A program made the translations under genes and the position numbers. Below the pieces are notes generated by a model that worked only from the letters and a program-made list of their open reading frames with translations, was not told where the DNA came from and made no database searches. From sequence record NC_022096.1: DNA of 64,000 nucleotides; one strand, given 5' to 3'. Below, one piece after another: positions 55,733-64,000 of this stretch (position 1 is the first letter of the stretch; the number at the start of each line of letters is the position of its first letter).

Positions 55733-56306
55733 TTGCTAACTCCGGATCGTGGACCACAAGCTCCACATTCAATTGGTGGTTGGCGATTGAGGCTTCCGTG
55801 TTATTGCGCTCATCGCAGATCACGTCAAAGCCTTTGTTTTCCGAGAGTACGGAGCGAGGCTTGTCGAAGACGTACACCCACGGCATGGTGCGAGTAGGCG
55901 TGTCGTTACTCGTTGCAGTCACGGTGACCACAAGATAACCTTGCGCCAACAAGCCTGCATCCCAGTCCACTTCCGCGACGACAGTGAACGGAGAATGCCC
56001 TTCGTAGCACACGTCGAGAAAACGCTCTATCAAACGATGCAGCGTTTCCTTGGCCGCGTCGGCAGCAACCTCTATCGGTGCGTTCTTGAAACTGGAACGC
56101 AACAACGCCAGAGTTGCGGAGTTTGCCGTGAACAAGGCGTTCATGAAGTACGTCGGTGCTTTCGGACTCTTGGCGTCGTGCAGAATCGCACACAGCGAGC
56201 GCCACGTCTCAGGCATTTCGTCAATCACCCTCTCCGCGTATTGCAGATCGATGAAACGAGCGAGTACGCCACCTGCCTGCGGATCATTACTGAGCACGCC
56301 TAGCAT
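55632..56306 (-). CDS. Hypothetical protein
   Basis: 224 aa; about 100 nt overlap at the 3' end. Confidence 0.5.
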   Translation of the reverse strand: MLGVLSNDPQAGGVLARFIDLQYAERVIDEMPETWRSLCAILHDAKSPKAPTYFMNALFTANSATLALLRSSFKNAPIEVAADAAKETLHRLIERFLDVCYEGHSPFTVVAEVDWDAGLLAQGYLVVTVTATSNDTPTRTMPWVYVFDKPRSVLSENKGFDVICDERNNTEASIANHQLNVELVVHDPELANAFRQNQHPWRLESDQSQPPSCRYFGPTKSSDD

Positions 56307-56623
56307 TGTGCCTTCTCCAGCGGAGTGATGATAACGGTTCTCTCAGGCTTACCTGCAACGATCTTGGCCCCAGTAAAATCCGGATACTCCGTACGGTGCA
56401 GGTCGTCACGCCACTTGCCGCCTTTGGCTATGACGTTGCGACTGCGCTTGTAGTAGACGCCGCACTTACACGTATGGTCAATCTCGCCGCCGTCACCCGT
56501 GTCGTACTCGTCCGACAGGTAGGTGCGATCCTCGATCAACGCACCGCACTTGCACTGCAGGACATGGATGTGAAGTTGTGGGTACTTAGCTTCCGCCATT
56601 GGCTTCATCCTCTGCCGTTGCAT
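56300..56623 (-). CDS. Small CxC-pair (zinc-binding?) protein
   Basis: QCKCG...TCKCG; true start may be MAEAK. Confidence 0.5.
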   Translation of the reverse strand: MQRQRMKPMAEAKYPQLHIHVLQCKCGALIEDRTYLSDEYDTGDGGEIDHTCKCGVYYKRSRNVIAKGGKWRDDLHRTEYPDFTGAKIVAGKPERTVIITPLEKAQC

Positions 56624-56843
56624 CGAGCAGTGCAGTCAAGCCATCGCGCAGCGCTACTAGGCTTTCTCGATCAGTAACCACACCGGCGCGATGGCCTCCT
56701 TCGAGTTCTATACCGAAGCCGGTGCCCCAGCTATCGTCCCATTTGACGACATCGATGTGACCTCCGCCATTGCCTTCTGGATACGCGCCTTTAAGGGCAA
56801 GATGGAAACCGGGTCGTTTGCTTTTGCGCTCTCGTGTGCTCAT
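56586..56843 (-). CDS. Hypothetical protein
   Basis: ATG 56843 just after the upstream stop. Confidence 0.5.
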   Translation of the reverse strand: MSTRERKSKRPGFHLALKGAYPEGNGGGHIDVVKWDDSWGTGFGIELEGGHRAGVVTDRESLVALRDGLTALLDATAEDEANGGS

Positions 56844-56847
56844 CGGC

Positions 56848-57651
56848 TCACTTCCTGTTCCGCTTGCGACTCTTGGCTTGCTGTTTCCGCTTCGCCTTGT
56901 TCTTGGCGCGCTGCTTCTCACCAGGCCCTTTCAACGGAGGGTGGCCGGCGTAGTCCCAACCGTTAGACGTATCGACCACTACACGGCCGTCATCCATCTT
57001 AGGCAGAAAACCCAGGCTATCGACGTGTATGACGTACGGCGTCATGCCACGAGCTTTTCCATGGTCGATGTGGCCCACGGTGCCGACATTTGGATGATTT
57101 GCCTGTCGAGCAGTGCGCTCTTCCTCGCCCAGTATGTGAGTCAGGGCGTTTAGGTAGGGCATGGCATTGCGAACTTTTGCCTCGGCATCCGCTACGCTGC
57201 GGTCTTTCGAGGAGTCCCACTCGGTCCATCCGTCACGCGGCTCTCGGGCAAACATCATAAACTCGTGCCAGTCAAGCTCCACATGCCAGTCTTCGGCAAT
57301 GTGTGGAAGCAATGCGATGAACGCATACTGGGTGTTGATGTCCTTGAAACAAGCGTAGAAATCCAACCCACGCCCTTCGAGTACGGTGCGCGGTGCGGCC
57401 TCATCCTCTTCACCGTACGGTGAATTGCGAAAGCCTGGAATAGCCGATGACATTGCACTGGGCACCCAGTCGCCGTAGCTGCTCAGGCAGAGAAAGCGAA
57501 AGGCTTCCGTTTCGGTAATTGCCTCGGGCAAGTCCAAGCTTTCCCACGGCGCGAAGTCGTTGTCCTCGTTTGGTGTGAAGCGTGGCGCCAGCGCAGTCAG
57601 CAGCTCCTCTTTCAAGGTAACGTGACCGCGAATGTGTGCGTAATCACCCAT
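56848..57651 (-). CDS. Hypothetical protein carrying an EF-Tu G1-like peptide and a basic tail
   Basis: NVGTVGHIDHGK at 57055-57090; C-term KQRAKNKAKRKQQAKSRKRNRK. Confidence 0.65.
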   Translation of the reverse strand: MGDYAHIRGHVTLKEELLTALAPRFTPNEDNDFAPWESLDLPEAITETEAFRFLCLSSYGDWVPSAMSSAIPGFRNSPYGEEDEAAPRTVLEGRGLDFYACFKDINTQYAFIALLPHIAEDWHVELDWHEFMMFAREPRDGWTEWDSSKDRSVADAEAKVRNAMPYLNALTHILGEEERTARQANHPNVGTVGHIDHGKARGMTPYVIHVDSLGFLPKMDDGRVVVDTSNGWDYAGHPPLKGPGEKQRAKNKAKRKQQAKSRKRNRK

Positions 57652-57964
57652 GATCTTTCCTTGTTCGTATGTTGGTTAGCTCTCGGATTAGGTCGTCCTG
57701 CATCACAGAGAGCGGGCCGCGCAAAGGCGCCAAATGCTTTTCTGGTATGGCGCCAATTTCACTTTCGTAGTTCAGCCCAAATCGATCACTTAGAACGAGC
57801 CTGCCGCGGACGATCCAGACTCGCTCTCGCTTTTCGTTGTCCGTGGTGTGTTCACCGTATCGAACTACAGCGTCAGTGGTACAACGCACCAGCGTGACGC
57901 CACGCATCAGGTTTTCATCGTGCGCTGCCTTAACGATCAACGCTGGATCGCCCACGTTGAACAT
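57644..57964 (-). CDS. Hypothetical protein (SH3/KOW-like start)
   Basis: MFNVGDPALIV; 8 nt overlap. Confidence 0.5.
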   Translation of the reverse strand: MFNVGDPALIVKAAHDENLMRGVTLVRCTTDAVVRYGEHTTDNEKRERVWIVRGRLVLSDRFGLNYESEIGAIPEKHLAPLRGPLSVMQDDLIRELTNIRTRKDHG

Positions 57965-57967
57965 GGC

Positions 57968-58510
57968 TTAGCCCTCGACAGAATCACGCAGGTGCTGCGC
58001 CTGTTCACGGTCGCGCATGGCGTCGATTGTTTCCTGCAGTTCTGCTTCTTTCGCCTTGAGCGTTTCGATTTCTGCAAACTGCGCACGTACCAACCGAGCA
58101 GATTCCTGATACAGGTTGGGTAAGATGTCATCGCCGATGCCAGTGACGTTGCCGACGTTGATCCCGCCCTGCTTGTCGCCTTCTTCGTCGAGTGCATCCA
58201 GAATTTCCTGAATCTGGCTCTGACTGAACCCGTTGAGTTGCAGGTATTGCACTGCGTTGTAGTCGCGCAGGTGATCGATGTCGATGCCGTCGCCTTGGCT
58301 CATGCCGTGAAGCATGTCACCAACAACGCCCACGCTCAGCCACTTGCTGTGATGGAACTCGCTGATCAGGTCATGATACGCTTCACGCAGGCGCGCATTC
58401 ACAACGGCTTCGGAGTTCTCACGCTTACGCGGCCACATGCGAGTGACCACCATGACCAGAATTGCGATAACGACAAACTGCCACAGCGGCAGCGAAAGGG
58501 TATGCTCCAC
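57968..58510 (-). CDS. Single-pass membrane protein with coiled-coil tail
   Basis: TM LWQFVVIAILVMVV; AGGAG SD. Confidence 0.55.
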   Translation of the reverse strand: MEHTLSLPLWQFVVIAILVMVVTRMWPRKRENSEAVVNARLREAYHDLISEFHHSKWLSVGVVGDMLHGMSQGDGIDIDHLRDYNAVQYLQLNGFSQSQIQEILDALDEEGDKQGGINVGNVTGIGDDILPNLYQESARLVRAQFAEIETLKAKEAELQETIDAMRDREQAQHLRDSVEG

Positions 58511-58519
58511 GGCATTCTC

Positions 58520-58723
58520 CTAGTATTGGACGTAGCGTTCTTTGATGAGTTGCTCGGCTTCGCAGTTGCTGTCCATGTAGACCAGCTCGCTGCACTTCGT
58601 TGCACCTGGTGCGTGATCCTGAATGAAGGCTTTACCCAAAGGCATCTGGACGCTACGGTCACTGTTGTAGAACCGCTCACGCCATTTTTCCCAGTCAATC
58701 GCTTTCAAGGTGATCGCACACAT
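58520..58723 (-). CDS. Hypothetical protein
   Basis: GGAG SD; fills the gap. Confidence 0.5.
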   Translation of the reverse strand: MCAITLKAIDWEKWRERFYNSDRSVQMPLGKAFIQDHAPGATKCSELVYMDSNCEAEQLIKERYVQY

Positions 58724-58726
58724 TGG

Positions 58727-59224
58727 TTAGTCTCCGTAGACAATGGCCGCCAGATCAAACGAGTCCCGCAGTAAGTTGACAAGCACGCCAGTAGACCCGT
58801 TGAAAGCGTGGGTGAGCCCGTGCTTCTCCACGTAAATCCAACCGTTCGCCTCATTGACGCGCAAGTACGCATCGCCAATACGCGCTACACCGCGATTGCT
58901 CCACTTGATCGGGAAGCGGTCACAGAACAGCGCGTACAGCCACGCTCCGCGATCGGTGTGGATGTGCGGAGCAGCGGTGAAGTGGTTGATGAGTTCACCG
59001 ACCGACGTGATGACGAGCGTGGCAAACATCGCCTTCGGGAACTGATAACGAATGTACGGCCCATCGCCGTTGTGCTCTTGGTGCAACGTACCCAAGAAGC
59101 GCCCATCAGCGTCGTGGATTTCTTCGTCTCGCCGACCGTAGGATTTAACCTGCCAGCCGGCTTCGATCAGAGCGTTCACGATGTCGATGAACGCTTGGGT
59201 CTTGCCTTCGGTCGCTTGTCTCAC
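58727..59224 (-). CDS. Hypothetical protein
   Basis: GTGA overlap with the upstream gene. Confidence 0.5.
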   Translation of the reverse strand: MRQATEGKTQAFIDIVNALIEAGWQVKSYGRRDEEIHDADGRFLGTLHQEHNGDGPYIRYQFPKAMFATLVITSVGELINHFTAAPHIHTDRGAWLYALFCDRFPIKWSNRGVARIGDAYLRVNEANGWIYVEKHGLTHAFNGSTGVLVNLLRDSFDLAAIVYGD

Positions 59225-60123
59225 AGGCTACCATCCCATGCCAGTTCAGTGTGTGCGAAGCAGCTATAAAACTGCACCTCGCTCTCATGGTAGAACAGAA
59301 GGTTTGCCTTGCTCTTGAGCTCCTCGTCACCTTCCATGCCGATGGAGTTGCGCATGATCCCAGTGTGCAACTGGAAGTTTCTGGGCTCCATGACCAGCAG
59401 ATACGGAGCTAGAACCTCCAGATCACTCGCACGGATCAGTGCGCGCCCTTGGCGCTGCTCGTTCGTGTTGTCATCGACCATCTTGAGCAACTGCACGTTG
59501 TCGGCCGCACCCGCGTCATCCAGATCACGCAACACACGCGCATCGTCGAACAAGGCAAACACCTCACTAAACTTCTCGCACGCATACCAACGACCTCCGA
59601 ATTGCACAGCGTAGGTGCTGTGCCTCATCGCCGTCTTCCGACGGTCGTTGTGGTAGTTGTTGTAGATGATCTGCGCAAATGGCCGATCCGGAACTTCGCT
59701 GAATGCGATGTTGATGGCTGGGCATGCACGGCGGTTGCCGCTGAACCCAACCATGTCGAAGCGCACGATCTTGGTATGATTCTCGAACAGGAGTTCGGCG
59801 GTCTCCAGCTTCTGGATATGCTGACGCATTGCCTGACGTGCGTGCCGTTGCCGGTGGCGCAGTTCCTGCTCTTTCTTGAAGAACCAAGCCAGTCTCGGAC
59901 CTGCCTGACTCACAGTCACCGTGACGGACTCTGCGCCCATCTGCATGGACACAGCGTAGTTTTGGATGCTGAGCGACACTTGGACGTAGGAGTCCTTGAT
60001 GTCGATGCCTACTTGAAACTCGCCTTGCTCCTTCACGCTGAATTGGCGATTCGGGTAGCGTTGCTTGAACTTCGCGGCGAGTGATTCGGCCGAACTCAGC
60101 AGGCTAGCGTGTGTGCGTTTCAT
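59221..60123 (-). CDS. Hypothetical protein
   Basis: 300 aa; GAGG SD. Confidence 0.55.
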   Translation of the reverse strand: MKRTHASLLSSAESLAAKFKQRYPNRQFSVKEQGEFQVGIDIKDSYVQVSLSIQNYAVSMQMGAESVTVTVSQAGPRLAWFFKKEQELRHRQRHARQAMRQHIQKLETAELLFENHTKIVRFDMVGFSGNRRACPAINIAFSEVPDRPFAQIIYNNYHNDRRKTAMRHSTYAVQFGGRWYACEKFSEVFALFDDARVLRDLDDAGAADNVQLLKMVDDNTNEQRQGRALIRASDLEVLAPYLLVMEPRNFQLHTGIMRNSIGMEGDEELKSKANLLFYHESEVQFYSCFAHTELAWDGSL

Positions 60124-60134
60124 GATCTGGTACC

Positions 60135-60494
60135 TCAGGTTCCCAACGGCGCATGGTCGCGCAGGTGGTGCATGTTGACGTTGGTGCTCGACCAGTTGTT
60201 CTGCAGGTGACTGATGAGCAGCGCATCCCGAGCGGGTCGAGACTTGACGCCGCCGAGCGATTCACTTTCGCCCCAGCAAGTCACCTTGCCTTTATCGTCG
60301 ATGCTGACGAAGCCTGCCGACAGCACGTTGCCTACGAAGCAATTGTGGTCGTAGCGACGATAAGCAAGCGACACGGAGTCGTACATGCCTTTGTGGGCGA
60401 TGATGTTGGCAAACAGGATGGGCACCTCGTGCTTACCGTTGGCGTCACGGCTTTCAAACTCGACGACGATGTACTTCATTTCCATAGGATGCAC
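60135..60494 (-). CDS. Conserved phage hypothetical protein
   Basis: KYIVV...PILF...H...SAGFV...CWGESESL..SRP pattern; GGAGG SD. Confidence 0.55.
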   Translation of the reverse strand: MHPMEMKYIVVEFESRDANGKHEVPILFANIIAHKGMYDSVSLAYRRYDHNCFVGNVLSAGFVSIDDKGKVTCWGESESLGGVKSRPARDALLISHLQNNWSSTNVNMHHLRDHAPLGT

Positions 60495-60733
60495 CCTCCA
60501 GTGCGCTTTGCAAGTTCGTATGCTACTTCCATGGCGCGGTCACGGTCCTGATACGGCATGCCATCGTAGCAAGTCCAGAAGAGAAGACCTTGACCGCGCA
60601 CTTCCACGTGCCAACCGAAAACGCCGTACGGGTTGTCGTAGTAGCGCACGCGCACTTGCTGTTCGCCGAAGTTCCAAGACCGCAGGGAAAGCTGCAAGTA
60701 GTGCAGCACCATGAACAACCAGTAGACGTTCAT
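60476..60733 (-). CDS. Hypothetical protein
   Basis: GGAG SD. Confidence 0.5.
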   Translation of the reverse strand: MNVYWLFMVLHYLQLSLRSWNFGEQQVRVRYYDNPYGVFGWHVEVRGQGLLFWTCYDGMPYQDRDRAMEVAYELAKRTGGCILWK

Positions 60734-60736
60734 AGG

Positions 60737-61153
60737 TTACTCCGGGCGTGTCGGGACAGACACTTCGAGAATGTGGGGTCGAATCGGACCTCCACTTTCC
60801 ATTGGGTAGATGTCCTGCCGAGACTCGAAGCAAATCTCAGCACACAGCTTACCGTTGCGAACAAGCATACGCCGAAGAATGCCGATACCAAGCTCTTCGT
60901 GGAAGACTGCTTCGCCTTCTTCCGGACACCAAGACACCGTACGCTTCTTGACCTCCTGAGTGTCTACGCCTACGACTCGGCCTTCATCTTCCTCGATGGA
61001 ACGTGCCAGACGTGCGATGATTTCGGAGTTCATGCTGCGATGGTGCGTACGGGCAACGTCCGCGATGCGTTCGCGCATGCCATCCGGCAAACGCACGACA
61101 AACTTGTCGGCGCTGCGGCTGTTATACGGCATACGGGATTTCTCGTTATTCAT
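60737..61153 (-). CDS. Arc/AmrZ-family ribbon-helix-helix transcription regulator
   Basis: [40 protein letters not shown], very close to the Pseudomonas AmrZ N-terminal domain as recalled. Confidence 0.85.
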
Positions 61154-61195
61154 AATCTCATCCTAATGGGTGAACGACTTCTGTTTACACAACCA

Positions 61196-61804
61196 TCAGC
61201 GCTTGTTCGCTTCGCAGCACGGGCAGCCTTCGTGCGTGTTCACATTCGGACTTGCAGCGCCCGGGACCGCAGTTGCACGGAACATACGGTTCTCAAACTG
61301 CTTGAAGTGAATGTGCTCTTCCTGCTTGGCGAACACCAACTCACCCGCGCGCAGACCTTCTCCTGCAACGCGGTCAATCCTTCTGTTCCCGGTAGCAATA
61401 ACTACCTTGGTTTTGTGCACCTTCTTGTAGCGCGGAATGATCGTGCAGCCGCGACGCCCAGCTTCCCAGAAATCCATCGGCTGATCGCGCCCAGCTTTGC
61501 CTGCTGCCGTATGCAACTTGGCGTACTTGTCGAGACGCATCTGCCCGACGCTACGGCAGTCGCCTTGCTGCATGAGCACGTTGGTGTAGTAGGAACCGAG
61601 ATACGCCAGACCCCACTTCGTTTCGATGTGATGCTCGCCATTGGCGCTGCGCGTATGGATGATCAGCTTGCCGTTGAGCTTGCCGTAGTAGGTGCTCAGG
61701 ACGTAATGCTTCTCCACGTCACGTCCGTTGTTGAAGTAGATGGTCTGGCCGTAACGCAGCTTGAGCTTGCGATGCCAGCTTTCGGTACGCAGAAGGTTTC
61801 CCAC
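61196..61804 (-). CDS. Hypothetical protein
   Basis: GAGGAGG SD, GTG start. Confidence 0.55.
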   Translation of the reverse strand: MGNLLRTESWHRKLKLRYGQTIYFNNGRDVEKHYVLSTYYGKLNGKLIIHTRSANGEHHIETKWGLAYLGSYYTNVLMQQGDCRSVGQMRLDKYAKLHTAAGKAGRDQPMDFWEAGRRGCTIIPRYKKVHKTKVVIATGNRRIDRVAGEGLRAGELVFAKQEEHIHFKQFENRMFRATAVPGAASPNVNTHEGCPCCEANKR

Positions 61805-61805
61805 G

Positions 61806-62639
61806 TTACACCTCCTCGACGTTTGCTTTGGCGCGCAGCATGTAGGTGCTCTCCATTTCCTGCGCGAACGCGAACGCGGTCTGGTTCACTTGTTCCCATC
61901 CGCTAGGCACTTCAAACAAGCGCTCCTGCGGCAAGCGCATGAACAGGCCTAGGGCCAGGTGATCGAAGCGTGCAGGCAGCAACTGGGTACGCTTGCCGTC
62001 GATCTTGGCGCTGCCCATCGCACGAAACACACCGAACGCGGTGGCGAAGAAGTCGTTGACCTCGCTCGGCCCCTGCACTTCGCCTTTGAGCTGTTCGAGC
62101 AGTTCCTGAGCTTTGCGCCCAAAGGTCGTGCGCTTGTCGGGTTGCGCCATGACGACACCGCCGAACTCATCGTAGTTGTCGATGACTGTCCAGTTGCAGA
62201 ACGTGTGCAACTGCCTGTCTGTCCACGCAGCTTCAACTTCGTCACGCGCAGGAGCCATGCCGGGTTTGGTGCGGAAGAGCACACCGGCGACAGACAAACC
62301 TTCCAGCGGATGCCACGACGTTGCGATGTCCAAGCACTGGAAGTGCGTGTCAGCAAACGTCTTGAGCTTGTCAGCCAGAAACTCCTTGTGGGTCTTCTGA
62401 TCCAGATAGAGCTGGTCGAAGTCGAAGTCCTCGGCCTCGCGAAAGATGAAGTAGTGGTACGCGCTGTTCAGCGGTTCCATGTGGTTGATGATGGTCTCCA
62501 GCAGTTGCTTGTCCTGCTTGGATACCATAGATGCGTACTTGTGCATGTACTTGAGTCCATTGAACGGGCTGTTGGCCATATCGTAGGCCAGTGTTGTCGG
62601 ATCGTCGATGCTGCCATCGCGTACAGTCTGTTTACGCAT
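61806..62639 (-). CDS. Hypothetical protein
   Basis: Start reassigned to ATG 62639 (8 nt overlap with the upstream stop). Confidence 0.55.
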   Translation of the reverse strand: MRKQTVRDGSIDDPTTLAYDMANSPFNGLKYMHKYASMVSKQDKQLLETIINHMEPLNSAYHYFIFREAEDFDFDQLYLDQKTHKEFLADKLKTFADTHFQCLDIATSWHPLEGLSVAGVLFRTKPGMAPARDEVEAAWTDRQLHTFCNWTVIDNYDEFGGVVMAQPDKRTTFGRKAQELLEQLKGEVQGPSEVNDFFATAFGVFRAMGSAKIDGKRTQLLPARFDHLALGLFMRLPQERLFEVPSGWEQVNQTAFAFAQEMESTYMLRAKANVEEV

Positions 62640-62937
62640 TTGCGAGAACCCCCATTGCAACGATTGCTTTGCGGAAGAAATCACGCTCGCCTTCGGGGAA
62701 CGCTTCCCACGTGTCTTGCTCCAACGCAGTGTGACGCGCCTCGCCATTCAAGCGGTAGAGCGTATAGTGGTAGTCGGCGTGATGTGGGCTATCCACTGTG
62801 AACAGCCAGTTGCCTGCCTTGACCGCGTAACCCGCGCCCTCCCGTACAACTTTGACATCCAGGAGCAGCTCGGTTTGTTTGAGCTCCTTTTCTAGGCGCT
62901 TGCGAAAGCGTTCTACCTTAGCATACGGTGTCAGCAT
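62632..62937 (-). CDS. Hypothetical protein
   Basis: TAATG coupling. Confidence 0.5.
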   Translation of the reverse strand: MLTPYAKVERFRKRLEKELKQTELLLDVKVVREGAGYAVKAGNWLFTVDSPHHADYHYTLYRLNGEARHTALEQDTWEAFPEGERDFFRKAIVAMGVLANA

Positions 62938-63341
62938 TATTCAGCTTCCTCGTCGGAGCCCTTGACGGGTTTACGATCCCGCGGCAGCACGAAGGAGCGT
63001 TCGCCTTTGCCCAGGCGAGCATCCATTTCGCGCTGATACTGGATGTCCCACTTGCCTTCTTCGATATGTTCGCGCAGGTTCGCCCACGTATCGGCACTCG
63101 ACAGGCCTTGCTCGATTGCAGACTTGTGCATCTGCAGGACGTTGAGTTCGTCCTGATTCATGTACTGGTCACTCTCGGTACTGCTTAGGCGATCCATACG
63201 TTCCTGAATTTGCGCAGGCAGATCAGTTCGCATGTTGAGCGCCTTGAGCGCCTTCTTGCTTTGATTGAGTCCGTAGCGTTCGCCCACGCGCAACGCCTGA
63301 CGAATCACGTTCAAGGTTTCGTTGTCCAGAATGATGGCCAT
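62937..63341 (-). CDS. Hypothetical protein
   Basis: GAGG SD; tiles the arm. Confidence 0.5.
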   Translation of the reverse strand: MAIILDNETLNVIRQALRVGERYGLNQSKKALKALNMRTDLPAQIQERMDRLSSTESDQYMNQDELNVLQMHKSAIEQGLSSADTWANLREHIEEGKWDIQYQREMDARLGKGERSFVLPRDRKPVKGSDEEAE

Positions 63342-63346
63342 ACGAT

Positions 63347-63784
63347 CTAACCTCTGCCGATAAATGAAATTGTTGGGAACTTGTACCCGAACAACGCGAG
63401 ACGGAATTGCACAACAGGGCGGTTGTCTTCAAAGCAGCGCACTTCTCGGAATCGGAACCAGAACCAGTCCACCCACGCTTTGTACTCAAGCTCGGATACT
63501 ATGGTGGGTTCCTTCTTGGTGATCTGCGTATCACCTGAGCGATTTGCTGCTGCGCGCATTATATCGTCCAGAAGGCTGTGATGGCTCTCCATAACGAAAC
63601 GACCGCGCATCGCTTGGAGCACACCGTTGATGTACAAGCACGACCAGCAAAATGCTAGCGCCAACAGAATCAAGATCACTACTGGCGTTGCAGGTATGCC
63701 TACTTTGGCAGCCAACGTAGAGGCCACATCCAACGTGGCCCATACGGAGATTGCGTACAGAAGCACGAATGCTAAGCGGCGCAT
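63347..63784 (-). CDS. Two-TM membrane protein
   Basis: LAFVLLYAISVWATLDVA and VVILILLALAFCWSCLYI. Confidence 0.55.
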   Translation of the reverse strand: MRRLAFVLLYAISVWATLDVASTLAAKVGIPATPVVILILLALAFCWSCLYINGVLQAMRGRFVMESHHSLLDDIMRAAANRSGDTQITKKEPTIVSELEYKAWVDWFWFRFREVRCFEDNRPVVQFRLALFGYKFPTISFIGRG

Positions 63785-63787
63785 AGG

Positions 63788-63997
63788 TTAGTTCTCGCTA
63801 GCTCGATACAGGTCATAGCGGCCGAGTGGAAACTCCACCTCGGAGTGTGCAGTGCCCGCAATCTCCATTTGCATACAGTGCGGACAATGATGCTGCCCAA
63901 TAGGTTCACCCAGCAGAAGCTCAGGATGGCCCTTGCACTGAAAATCGGAGTCGCGGAAAACTCGCACCAGCACCAGACGCGGCACAGTACGATGCAC
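63788..63997 (-). CDS. Small Cys/His protein (start may lie outside the window)
   Basis: QCKGH...HHCPHC. Confidence 0.4.
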   Translation of the reverse strand: MHRTVPRLVLVRVFRDSDFQCKGHPELLLGEPIGQHHCPHCMQMEIAGTAHSEVEFPLGRYDLYRASEN

Positions 63998-64000
63998 GTA

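Follow-up and report, generated by a model that had tools for sequence, protein, structure and literature searches.

[quoted passage not shown] Its DNA-contact residues are K18, V20 and R22 on the strand, together with R14, R28 and N43 (Pryor et al., PMC3325190). The AmrZ N-terminus is extended and makes a non-specific contact with DNA, and a salt bridge between E51 and H39 lies at the dimer-dimer contact (PMC3325190). The helical tail of AmrZ (residues 67-108) has two functions. It mediates tetramerisation, which is needed for both activation and repression, as the title of Xu et al. 2016 states. It also carries the motif Q91/A94/L95, which binds SadB and leads to delivery of AmrZ to Lon.

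Homologues of AmrZ are found on mobile elements. Borges et al. (bioRxiv 10.1101/673095; Nat Microbiol 2020) described, in the preprint version, 14 AmrZ homologues on Pseudomonas mobile elements, with perfectly conserved DNA-contact residues. Six homologues were synthesised and 5/6 complemented a delta-amrZ mutant; the preprint text leaves the failing one unnamed. [quoted passage not shown] The readout given for amrZ_PaBG was a decrease in Csy1-sfCherry. The preprint text does not go into the tail domains.

A second phage protein was described in a 2026 paper on PhiPA1019, a 94-kb phage. Gp53 of this phage is an early-expressed RHH protein of 126 aa that binds the ftsZ, fleQ, pslA and amrZ promoters, alters over 3,000 host transcripts, and, when expressed, blocks cell division via ftsZ. 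Residues R15, R21, M35 and N36 of Gp53 are critical for DNA binding. The authors concluded that Gp53 is no functional equivalent of AmrZ (2026 PhiPA1019 paper).

Arc and Mnt of phage P22 share their Pfam family and fold with these proteins. They regulate phage operators through other recognition residues. Mnt, like AmrZ, appends a C-terminal oligomerisation module to its RHH domain (PMC3325190).

Here we describe the computational analysis of gp302, the AmrZ homologue of Pseudomonas phage PaBG. The gene is the amrZ_PaBG of Borges et al., and the PaBG genome papers named it algZ and speculated about host manipulation.

Results

The gene and its surroundings

We analysed a stretch of 64,000 nucleotides (hereafter the window) from the genome of Pseudomonas phage PaBG (KF147891.1 / NC_022096.1), a jumbo Baikalvirus of 258,139 bp with P. 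aeruginosa PAO1 as host. A position in the window equals the record position minus 186,000 (100% identity over 4 kb), and the gene is a 100% match to KF147891.1 246737-247153. An earlier interpretation made from the letters of the window (the sequence-only reading) had picked out this gene, and the 40 residues that it quoted are present exactly in the translation. The ORF listing gives an intact reading frame of 138 aa with an ATG start and a stop codon at 60737-60739 (Table 1).

Table 1. Features of gp302 and of neighbouring genes (positions in the window).
Feature	Position	Strand	Basis or remark
PaBG_00302 (AGS82173.2), gp302	60737..61153	-	138 codons + stop; phage AmrZ homologue
N-terminal extension, residues 1-11, before RHH strand	61121..61153	-	low pLDDT
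RHH (Arc/AmrZ-type) DNA-binding domain, residues 12-60	60974..61120	-	Pfam Arc and 3qoq matches
Linker, acidic and variable, residues 61-74	60932..60973	-	pLDDT <50 at residues 58-71
C-terminal beta domain (predicted), residues 75-138, W-x-P-x-x-G motif	60740..60931	-	AlphaFold2, five strands
Shine-Dalgarno-like AGGATGAG	61157..61164	-	within the 42-nt gap behind the upstream ORF; read from sequence
PaBG_00303	61196-61804	-	GenBank CDS 125 aa, ORF 202 aa; gene in syntenic PaBG-like contig 194 aa
PaBG_00300	60135-60485	-	PHROG 3988, function unknown, E 6.5e-22; just the first 110/284 profile positions
PaBG_00298	58727-59224	-	GenBank CDS 101 aa, ORF 165 aa; syntenic PaBG-like gene 165 aa
PaBG_00296	57968-58510	-	GenBank CDS 157 aa, ORF 180 aa; syntenic PaBG-like gene 180 aa

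The deposited label of PaBG_00302 is "alginate and motility regulator", and the RefSeq re-annotation reads "Arc-like transcriptional regulator". Consistent with the latter, gp302 matched PHROG 38161 (Arc-like transcriptional regulator) with an E-value of 1.2e-75, residues 8-138 aligning to profile positions 2-136/137.

Small ORFs in the same direction form a long run around PaBG_00302. An AGGA-type ribosome-binding site is located 7-8 nt 5' of its ATG. A promoter scan of the minus strand from 56000 to 64000 gave no sigma-70-like site, although phage promoters may differ. We found no Pfam matches among the nine neighbours scanned, and PaBG_00300 was the only one of the nine with a PHROG match. 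The GC content of the gene (55.4%) equals that of the phage (55.7%), indicating that PaBG_00302 is an old resident gene. We considered recent capture from the host and rejected it because of this GC content and because identity to AmrZ (71-85%) is confined to the RHH domain.

The sequence-only reading had placed the gene beside Rsm hairpins, as a second link to the lifestyle switch. Rfam gave no support for such hairpins at the gathering threshold: no family, including those of the RsmY/RsmZ type, reached its score in window positions 1-64000. There were also no tRNA genes in window positions 1-64000.

Some deposited gene starts near PaBG_00302 are probably placed too far downstream. For PaBG_00303, PaBG_00298 and PaBG_00296 the GenBank CDS is shorter than the ORF, and the syntenic genes of PaBG-like contigs are called longer (Table 1). 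Separately, two PaBG-like contigs encode a DUF4326 protein a few kb downstream of the AmrZ homologue (L003:11216-11545 and L005:8907-9236). The DUF4326 gene overlaps the end of the gene before it, and the PaBG GenBank annotation has no separate CDS at that place.

The RHH domain of gp302 matches AmrZ

We found that the N-terminal part of gp302 contains an AmrZ-type RHH domain. Residues 12-60 matched Pfam Arc (PF03869) with an E-value of 2.9e-20 and 72.3 bits (gathering cut-off 20.4), placing gp302 in that family. In a phmmer search of PDB sequences the best match was AmrZ (3qoq, 'Alginate and motility regulator Z'; E 1.2e-18), covering gp302 residues 8-56. The sequence-only reading had estimated that about 34 of 40 residues agree with AmrZ. 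In the printed phmmer alignment with 3qoq, exactly 34/40 residues are identical in that stretch and 35/49 (71%) overall. A BLASTP comparison with a chromosomal AmrZ of the Pseudomonadaceae (P0107, 108 aa) gave 41/48 identical residues, limited to residues 10-56 of gp302. As a sequence match, the likeness of the two RHH domains is far beyond chance.

The residues that contact DNA are conserved. R13, K17, V19, R21, R27 and N42 of gp302 correspond to R14, K18, V20, R22, R28 and N43 of AmrZ, so that every listed contact is present. The claim that the recognition strand and the upstream arginine are kept was therefore correct, and it extends to all six positions. Across 25 relatives of gp302, five of the contact residues were invariant; V19 showed no variation and its neighbour V20 almost none. 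Residues 1-11 of gp302, which extend the N-terminus as in AmrZ, were conserved in the PaBG-like relatives P0001-P0004. One position at the AmrZ dimer-dimer contact is different. The residue corresponding to AmrZ E51 is an alanine in gp302, and the geometry of a tetramer may differ as a consequence.

Both domains of gp302 are under purifying selection, as judged from substitution rates. In comparison with a 92%-identical relative, dN/dS was 0.04 for the RHH domain and 0.13 for the C-terminal domain.

The Arc family invites a different reading, in which gp302 mainly regulates the phage's own transcription as an Arc- or Mnt-like temporal switch and effects on host AmrZ targets are incidental. The founding members of the Arc Pfam family are phage repressors, the gene is surrounded by a long series of small phage ORFs of unknown function, and coiled-coil-tailed RHH proteins of the AmrZ-like kind are found in many temperate phages. 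However, similarity to the P22 proteins is marginal (E of 0.16 or higher), whereas the match to AmrZ is at 1e-18 with all specificity residues kept. P22 Arc matched gp302 at an E-value of 0.16 in the PDB search, and Mnt matched relative P0003 at 0.45. The specificity residues are also kept in PaBG-like, phiKZ-like and SM1-like lineages, which have the host genus in common but not their promoters. Effects on host genes have moreover been demonstrated (Borges et al.; Gp53 paper). By sequence similarity gp302 clusters with AmrZ and not with ordinary phage Arc repressors, the outcome expected if, as had been proposed, the domain is a phage-borne copy of that of AmrZ. We consider a role confined mainly to phage promoters quite unlikely. 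A direct scan for operators in the phage would be uninformative, since the published AmrZ consensus (an A/T-rich - GCC - A/T-rich 13-mer) occurs in 11% of background fragments.

The C-terminal domain is predicted to be a small beta barrel

The C-terminal part of gp302 differs from that of AmrZ. It had been described beforehand as beta-rich and unlike the AmrZ tail, and both parts of this description held up. The BLASTP match to chromosomal AmrZ P0107 ended at residue 56, with no alignment between the two tails. We built an AlphaFold2 model of gp302 on a 25-sequence alignment. The model has a disordered linker (residues 58-71) and an all-beta tail with five predicted strands (residues 82-85, 89-99, 102-109, 113-117 and 124-126; pLDDT 72-91). 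Among relatives, the sequence and the length of the linker differ (alignments A1/A2), and W75, P77 and P126 are invariant.

We compared the gp302 model with the PDB using Foldseek. Of the first 12 matches, 11 were RNA-polymerase-binding Tudor-like domains of bacteria. These included the Tudor domain of UvrD1 (9dqs), Mfd (6ac8/6aca), PcrA/UvrD (5dma), CdnL (2lqk), UvrD CTD-RNAP lobe (7egs) and CarD-beta1 (4xax). TM-scores were 0.76-0.78, normalised to targets of ~53 residues, with ~54 residues aligned. The best E-value was 5e-3, and the search gave nothing at 1e-3 or better. Weak sequence signals of the same kind came from three close relatives of gp302. In the tail region, P0003 and P0004 matched Pfam CarD_TRCF_RID below threshold (E 0.026, 15 bits, cut-off 23), and P0005 matched Pfam PcrA_UvrD_tudor below threshold (E 0.064, 13.5 bits, cut-off 23.9).

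These matches raise the possibility that the barrel is genuinely related to the polymerase-binding Tudor domains and anchors operator-bound gp302 on the host RNA polymerase, at its beta subunit. gp302 would then hold or recruit polymerase and be more than a plain AmrZ copy. The ranking of the Foldseek matches and the Pfam signals from P0003, P0004 and P0005 are in favour of this idea, as is the apparent dependence of PaBG on the host core polymerase. Several results go against it. No Foldseek E-value reached 1e-3, small beta barrels cross-match easily, and the Pfam scores were all under their gathering cut-offs. gp302 itself gave no match to either Pfam family, and its isolated tail matched no Pfam family at all. 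A profile of 19 C-terminal domains found nothing significant among PDB sequences; the best E-value was 0.14, and a Tudor chain of ERCC6L2 had 0.26. Searches of PDB sequences with P0003 and P0005 (phmmer) returned AmrZ and Arc only. Finally, the model of a more distant relative, P0011 (tail ~20% identical), matched Tudor, PWWP and other SH3-like barrels alike; PcrA/UvrD came sixth (E 0.075) and CarD eleventh.

Based on these results, the assignment of the gp302 tail to the Tudor/SH3-like barrels is well supported as a prediction. The more specific link to the UvrD/Mfd/CarD group is only a lead, because it was not reproduced with the P0011 model and no sequence match was significant. The N-terminal domain of CarD/CdnL, the RID of Mfd and the C-terminal domain of UvrD/PcrA are thus the best structural matches of the model, with a sequence relationship that is not significant. 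We regard a polymerase tether as rather unlikely. We know of no polymerase-binding Tudor-like domain that is fused to an RHH domain.

The predicted barrel tail was found in phages and only with an AmrZ-type RHH domain

We searched for the tail in large sequence collections. A profile of the tail gave 40 matches in a collection of 5.8 billion proteins, and 39 of them carry Pfam Arc; the remaining one is a 57-aa fragment. With the gp302 tail as phmmer query, 1.84 billion representatives yielded two genuine relatives, along with a repetitive sequence (P0122) that matched falsely. In these searches the predicted barrel tail was found only fused to an AmrZ-type RHH domain. The hallmarks of the tail family are a W-x-P-x-x-G start and a conserved proline near the end.

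Among viral contigs (IMG/VR), the barrel tail was present in 18 of the 80 best loci, and 12 of these 18 are on contigs of 170-277 kb, a size typical of jumbo phages. PaBG-like metagenomic phages keep the gene in synteny, at 92% and 60% identity. Barrel-tailed members also occur in phiKZ-like contigs, which carry genes for phiKZ internal proteins, and in SM1-like siphophages.

Cellular genomes gave a different picture. We scanned one genome per bacterial or archaeal species with the full-length gp302 alignment (the tail has no conserved 7-mer) and obtained at least 582 matches. The best 80 of these were all in Pseudomonadaceae or unclassified metagenomic bins, and none of the best 80 covers gp302 past residue 68. 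The barrel tail is therefore, within reach of these searches, a phage feature.

Other types of tail were seen on viral contigs. A group of mostly short IMG/VR contigs (L020, L022 and L027-L044; ~12-22 kb, one of 50 kb) ends within ~300 bases of an amrZ gene that has the helical tail of the host type. This looks like a recurrent provirus call with a boundary that takes in the chromosomal amrZ; alternatively, an element may have integrated beside amrZ. Large phage contigs also encode AmrZ-like proteins with other tails (L021, L023, L024 and L026, 76-228 kb; L047, L063 and L072, 267-284 kb). Some of these tails are host-like and helical with a conserved LSLHERELL stretch, and others are of a third, beta-rich type with a hydrophobic G-M-[VL]-A-Y-Y start. 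Given these several types, phages seem to have swapped AmrZ tails repeatedly.

gp302 shares two domains with the SM1-type protein and probably with Gp53

We found that the SM1-type protein (SM1_0115) is related to gp302 along nearly its whole length. The two proteins are 35% identical over residues 10-128, with both domains aligned. SM1 is a 93-kb phage, and its 126-aa protein has R15, R21, M35 and N36 at exactly the positions that are critical in Gp53. From the identical length, the similar phage sizes (94 and 93 kb) and these matching positions, we infer that Gp53 is an SM1-type member of the two-domain family of gp302.

Members of the Gp53/SM1_0115 family, encoded by ~94-kb siphophages, thus combine an AmrZ-type RHH domain with the W-x-P-x-x-G beta domain, as gp302 does. 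They differ from gp302 in having a more divergent RHH domain, for example in the strand AEKFVVRMP, and the division block through ftsZ is a property of Gp53. The phi3-type proteins, found on temperate phage contigs of ~30 kb, have short, coiled-coil-like tails, unlike gp302.

Discussion

Our results are most consistent with gp302 being a phage mimic of AmrZ. It would bind the same operators, with a barrel that replaces the helical tail, supplies a higher-order contact and frees the protein from control by SadB and Lon. We give this reading a probability of roughly 80%.

All AmrZ residues that contact bases or backbone are kept, and gp302 should therefore be able to occupy AmrZ operators. We expect it to bind as a dimer, probably as a dimer of dimers, to operators of the A/T-GCC-A/T type in the Pseudomonas chromosome, and to repress, and in places activate, AmrZ-controlled promoters. 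By analogy with the putative homologue Gp53, the flagellar, Psl and amrZ promoters are probably among those repressed; repression of CRISPR-Cas, where it is present, has been demonstrated. Overlap between the operators of gp302 and AmrZ may be partial, since Gp53 differs from AmrZ in function.

The tail is the part in which gp302 departs from AmrZ. Tetramerisation and the Q91/A94/L95 motif belong to the helical tail of AmrZ; in gp302 its place is taken by a predicted barrel of 64 residues, which would stand in for it behind a flexible linker. The barrel would probably give a higher-order contact, either by self-association or through a partner. The SadB-binding motif is seen in chromosomal AmrZ sequences and has no counterpart in gp302, which would probably escape SadB/Lon control. 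We infer the identity of the chromosomal operators, the oligomeric state and the SadB/Lon escape, as well as the timing of expression in PaBG, from the comparisons given here.

Loss of the AmrZ tail could also have the opposite effect. gp302 might be a dominant-negative poison that forms mixed RHH dimers with AmrZ that cannot tetramerise and so inactivates it, as the sequence-only reading had also suggested. The dimer-forming RHH region is 71-85% identical to that of AmrZ, and the tetramerisation tail of AmrZ is absent from gp302, as such a poison would require. But most phage homologues complement delta-amrZ, and amrZ_PaBG represses csy as overexpression of AmrZ does. In addition, according to the preprint, CRISPR-Cas would be more active on surfaces if AmrZ were lost (10.1101/673095), contrary to the interest of a phage. 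The published data show a gain of AmrZ-like function and fit the poison poorly. We consider it very unlikely.

We return to gp302 as a mimic that acts in the AmrZ network. It shares with AmrZ the RHH domain and the extended N-terminus, and it is encoded by a phage with phage-like GC content, whereas AmrZ is chromosomal. As it also lacks the helical tail, it is not a strict orthologue. Reprogramming of the host AmrZ regulon, the main proposal of the sequence-only reading, stands as far as the published Csy repression by amrZ_PaBG and the complementation by five of six homologues carry it; the novelty that it implied does not. That reading had also suggested an early protein, with receptor shut-off or a change in EPS as candidate benefits, whereas the effect demonstrated for gp302 is repression of CRISPR-Cas. 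Both this repression and the AmrZ nature of the gene had been published before. What we add is modest: a predicted fold for the tail, its restriction to phages, and the absence of the SadB/Lon handle.

PaBG encodes sigma factors, and no RNA polymerase has been described for it, so that the host transcription machinery remains relevant to this phage.

To our knowledge PAO1, on which PaBG is propagated, has no CRISPR-Cas system. Repression of CRISPR-Cas can therefore not be the sole benefit of gp302.

A stronger version of the mimic can be formulated. The barrel could be a phage-specific adaptor, evolutionarily akin to the polymerase-binding Tudor domains, that links recognition of AmrZ operators directly with the polymerase of the host and also hides the protein from SadB and Lon. 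We hold this combination to be improbable. If true, jumbo phages would have a family of host-takeover factors of their own, the 'uncontrollable AmrZ' proteins.

When phages carry a copy of a master regulator, this shows viruses making use of the repression circuits of their hosts. The circuit concerned here is the alginate/biofilm pathway, which also lowers CRISPR-Cas, and for gp302 this point has already been tested in print. In at least three unrelated lineages of Pseudomonas phages, two of them jumbo, the control handle of AmrZ has been exchanged for what is predicted to be a small barrel. The partner of this barrel would explain how proteins of the Gp53 type exceed AmrZ, and how the regulator could be active regardless of the state of the host.
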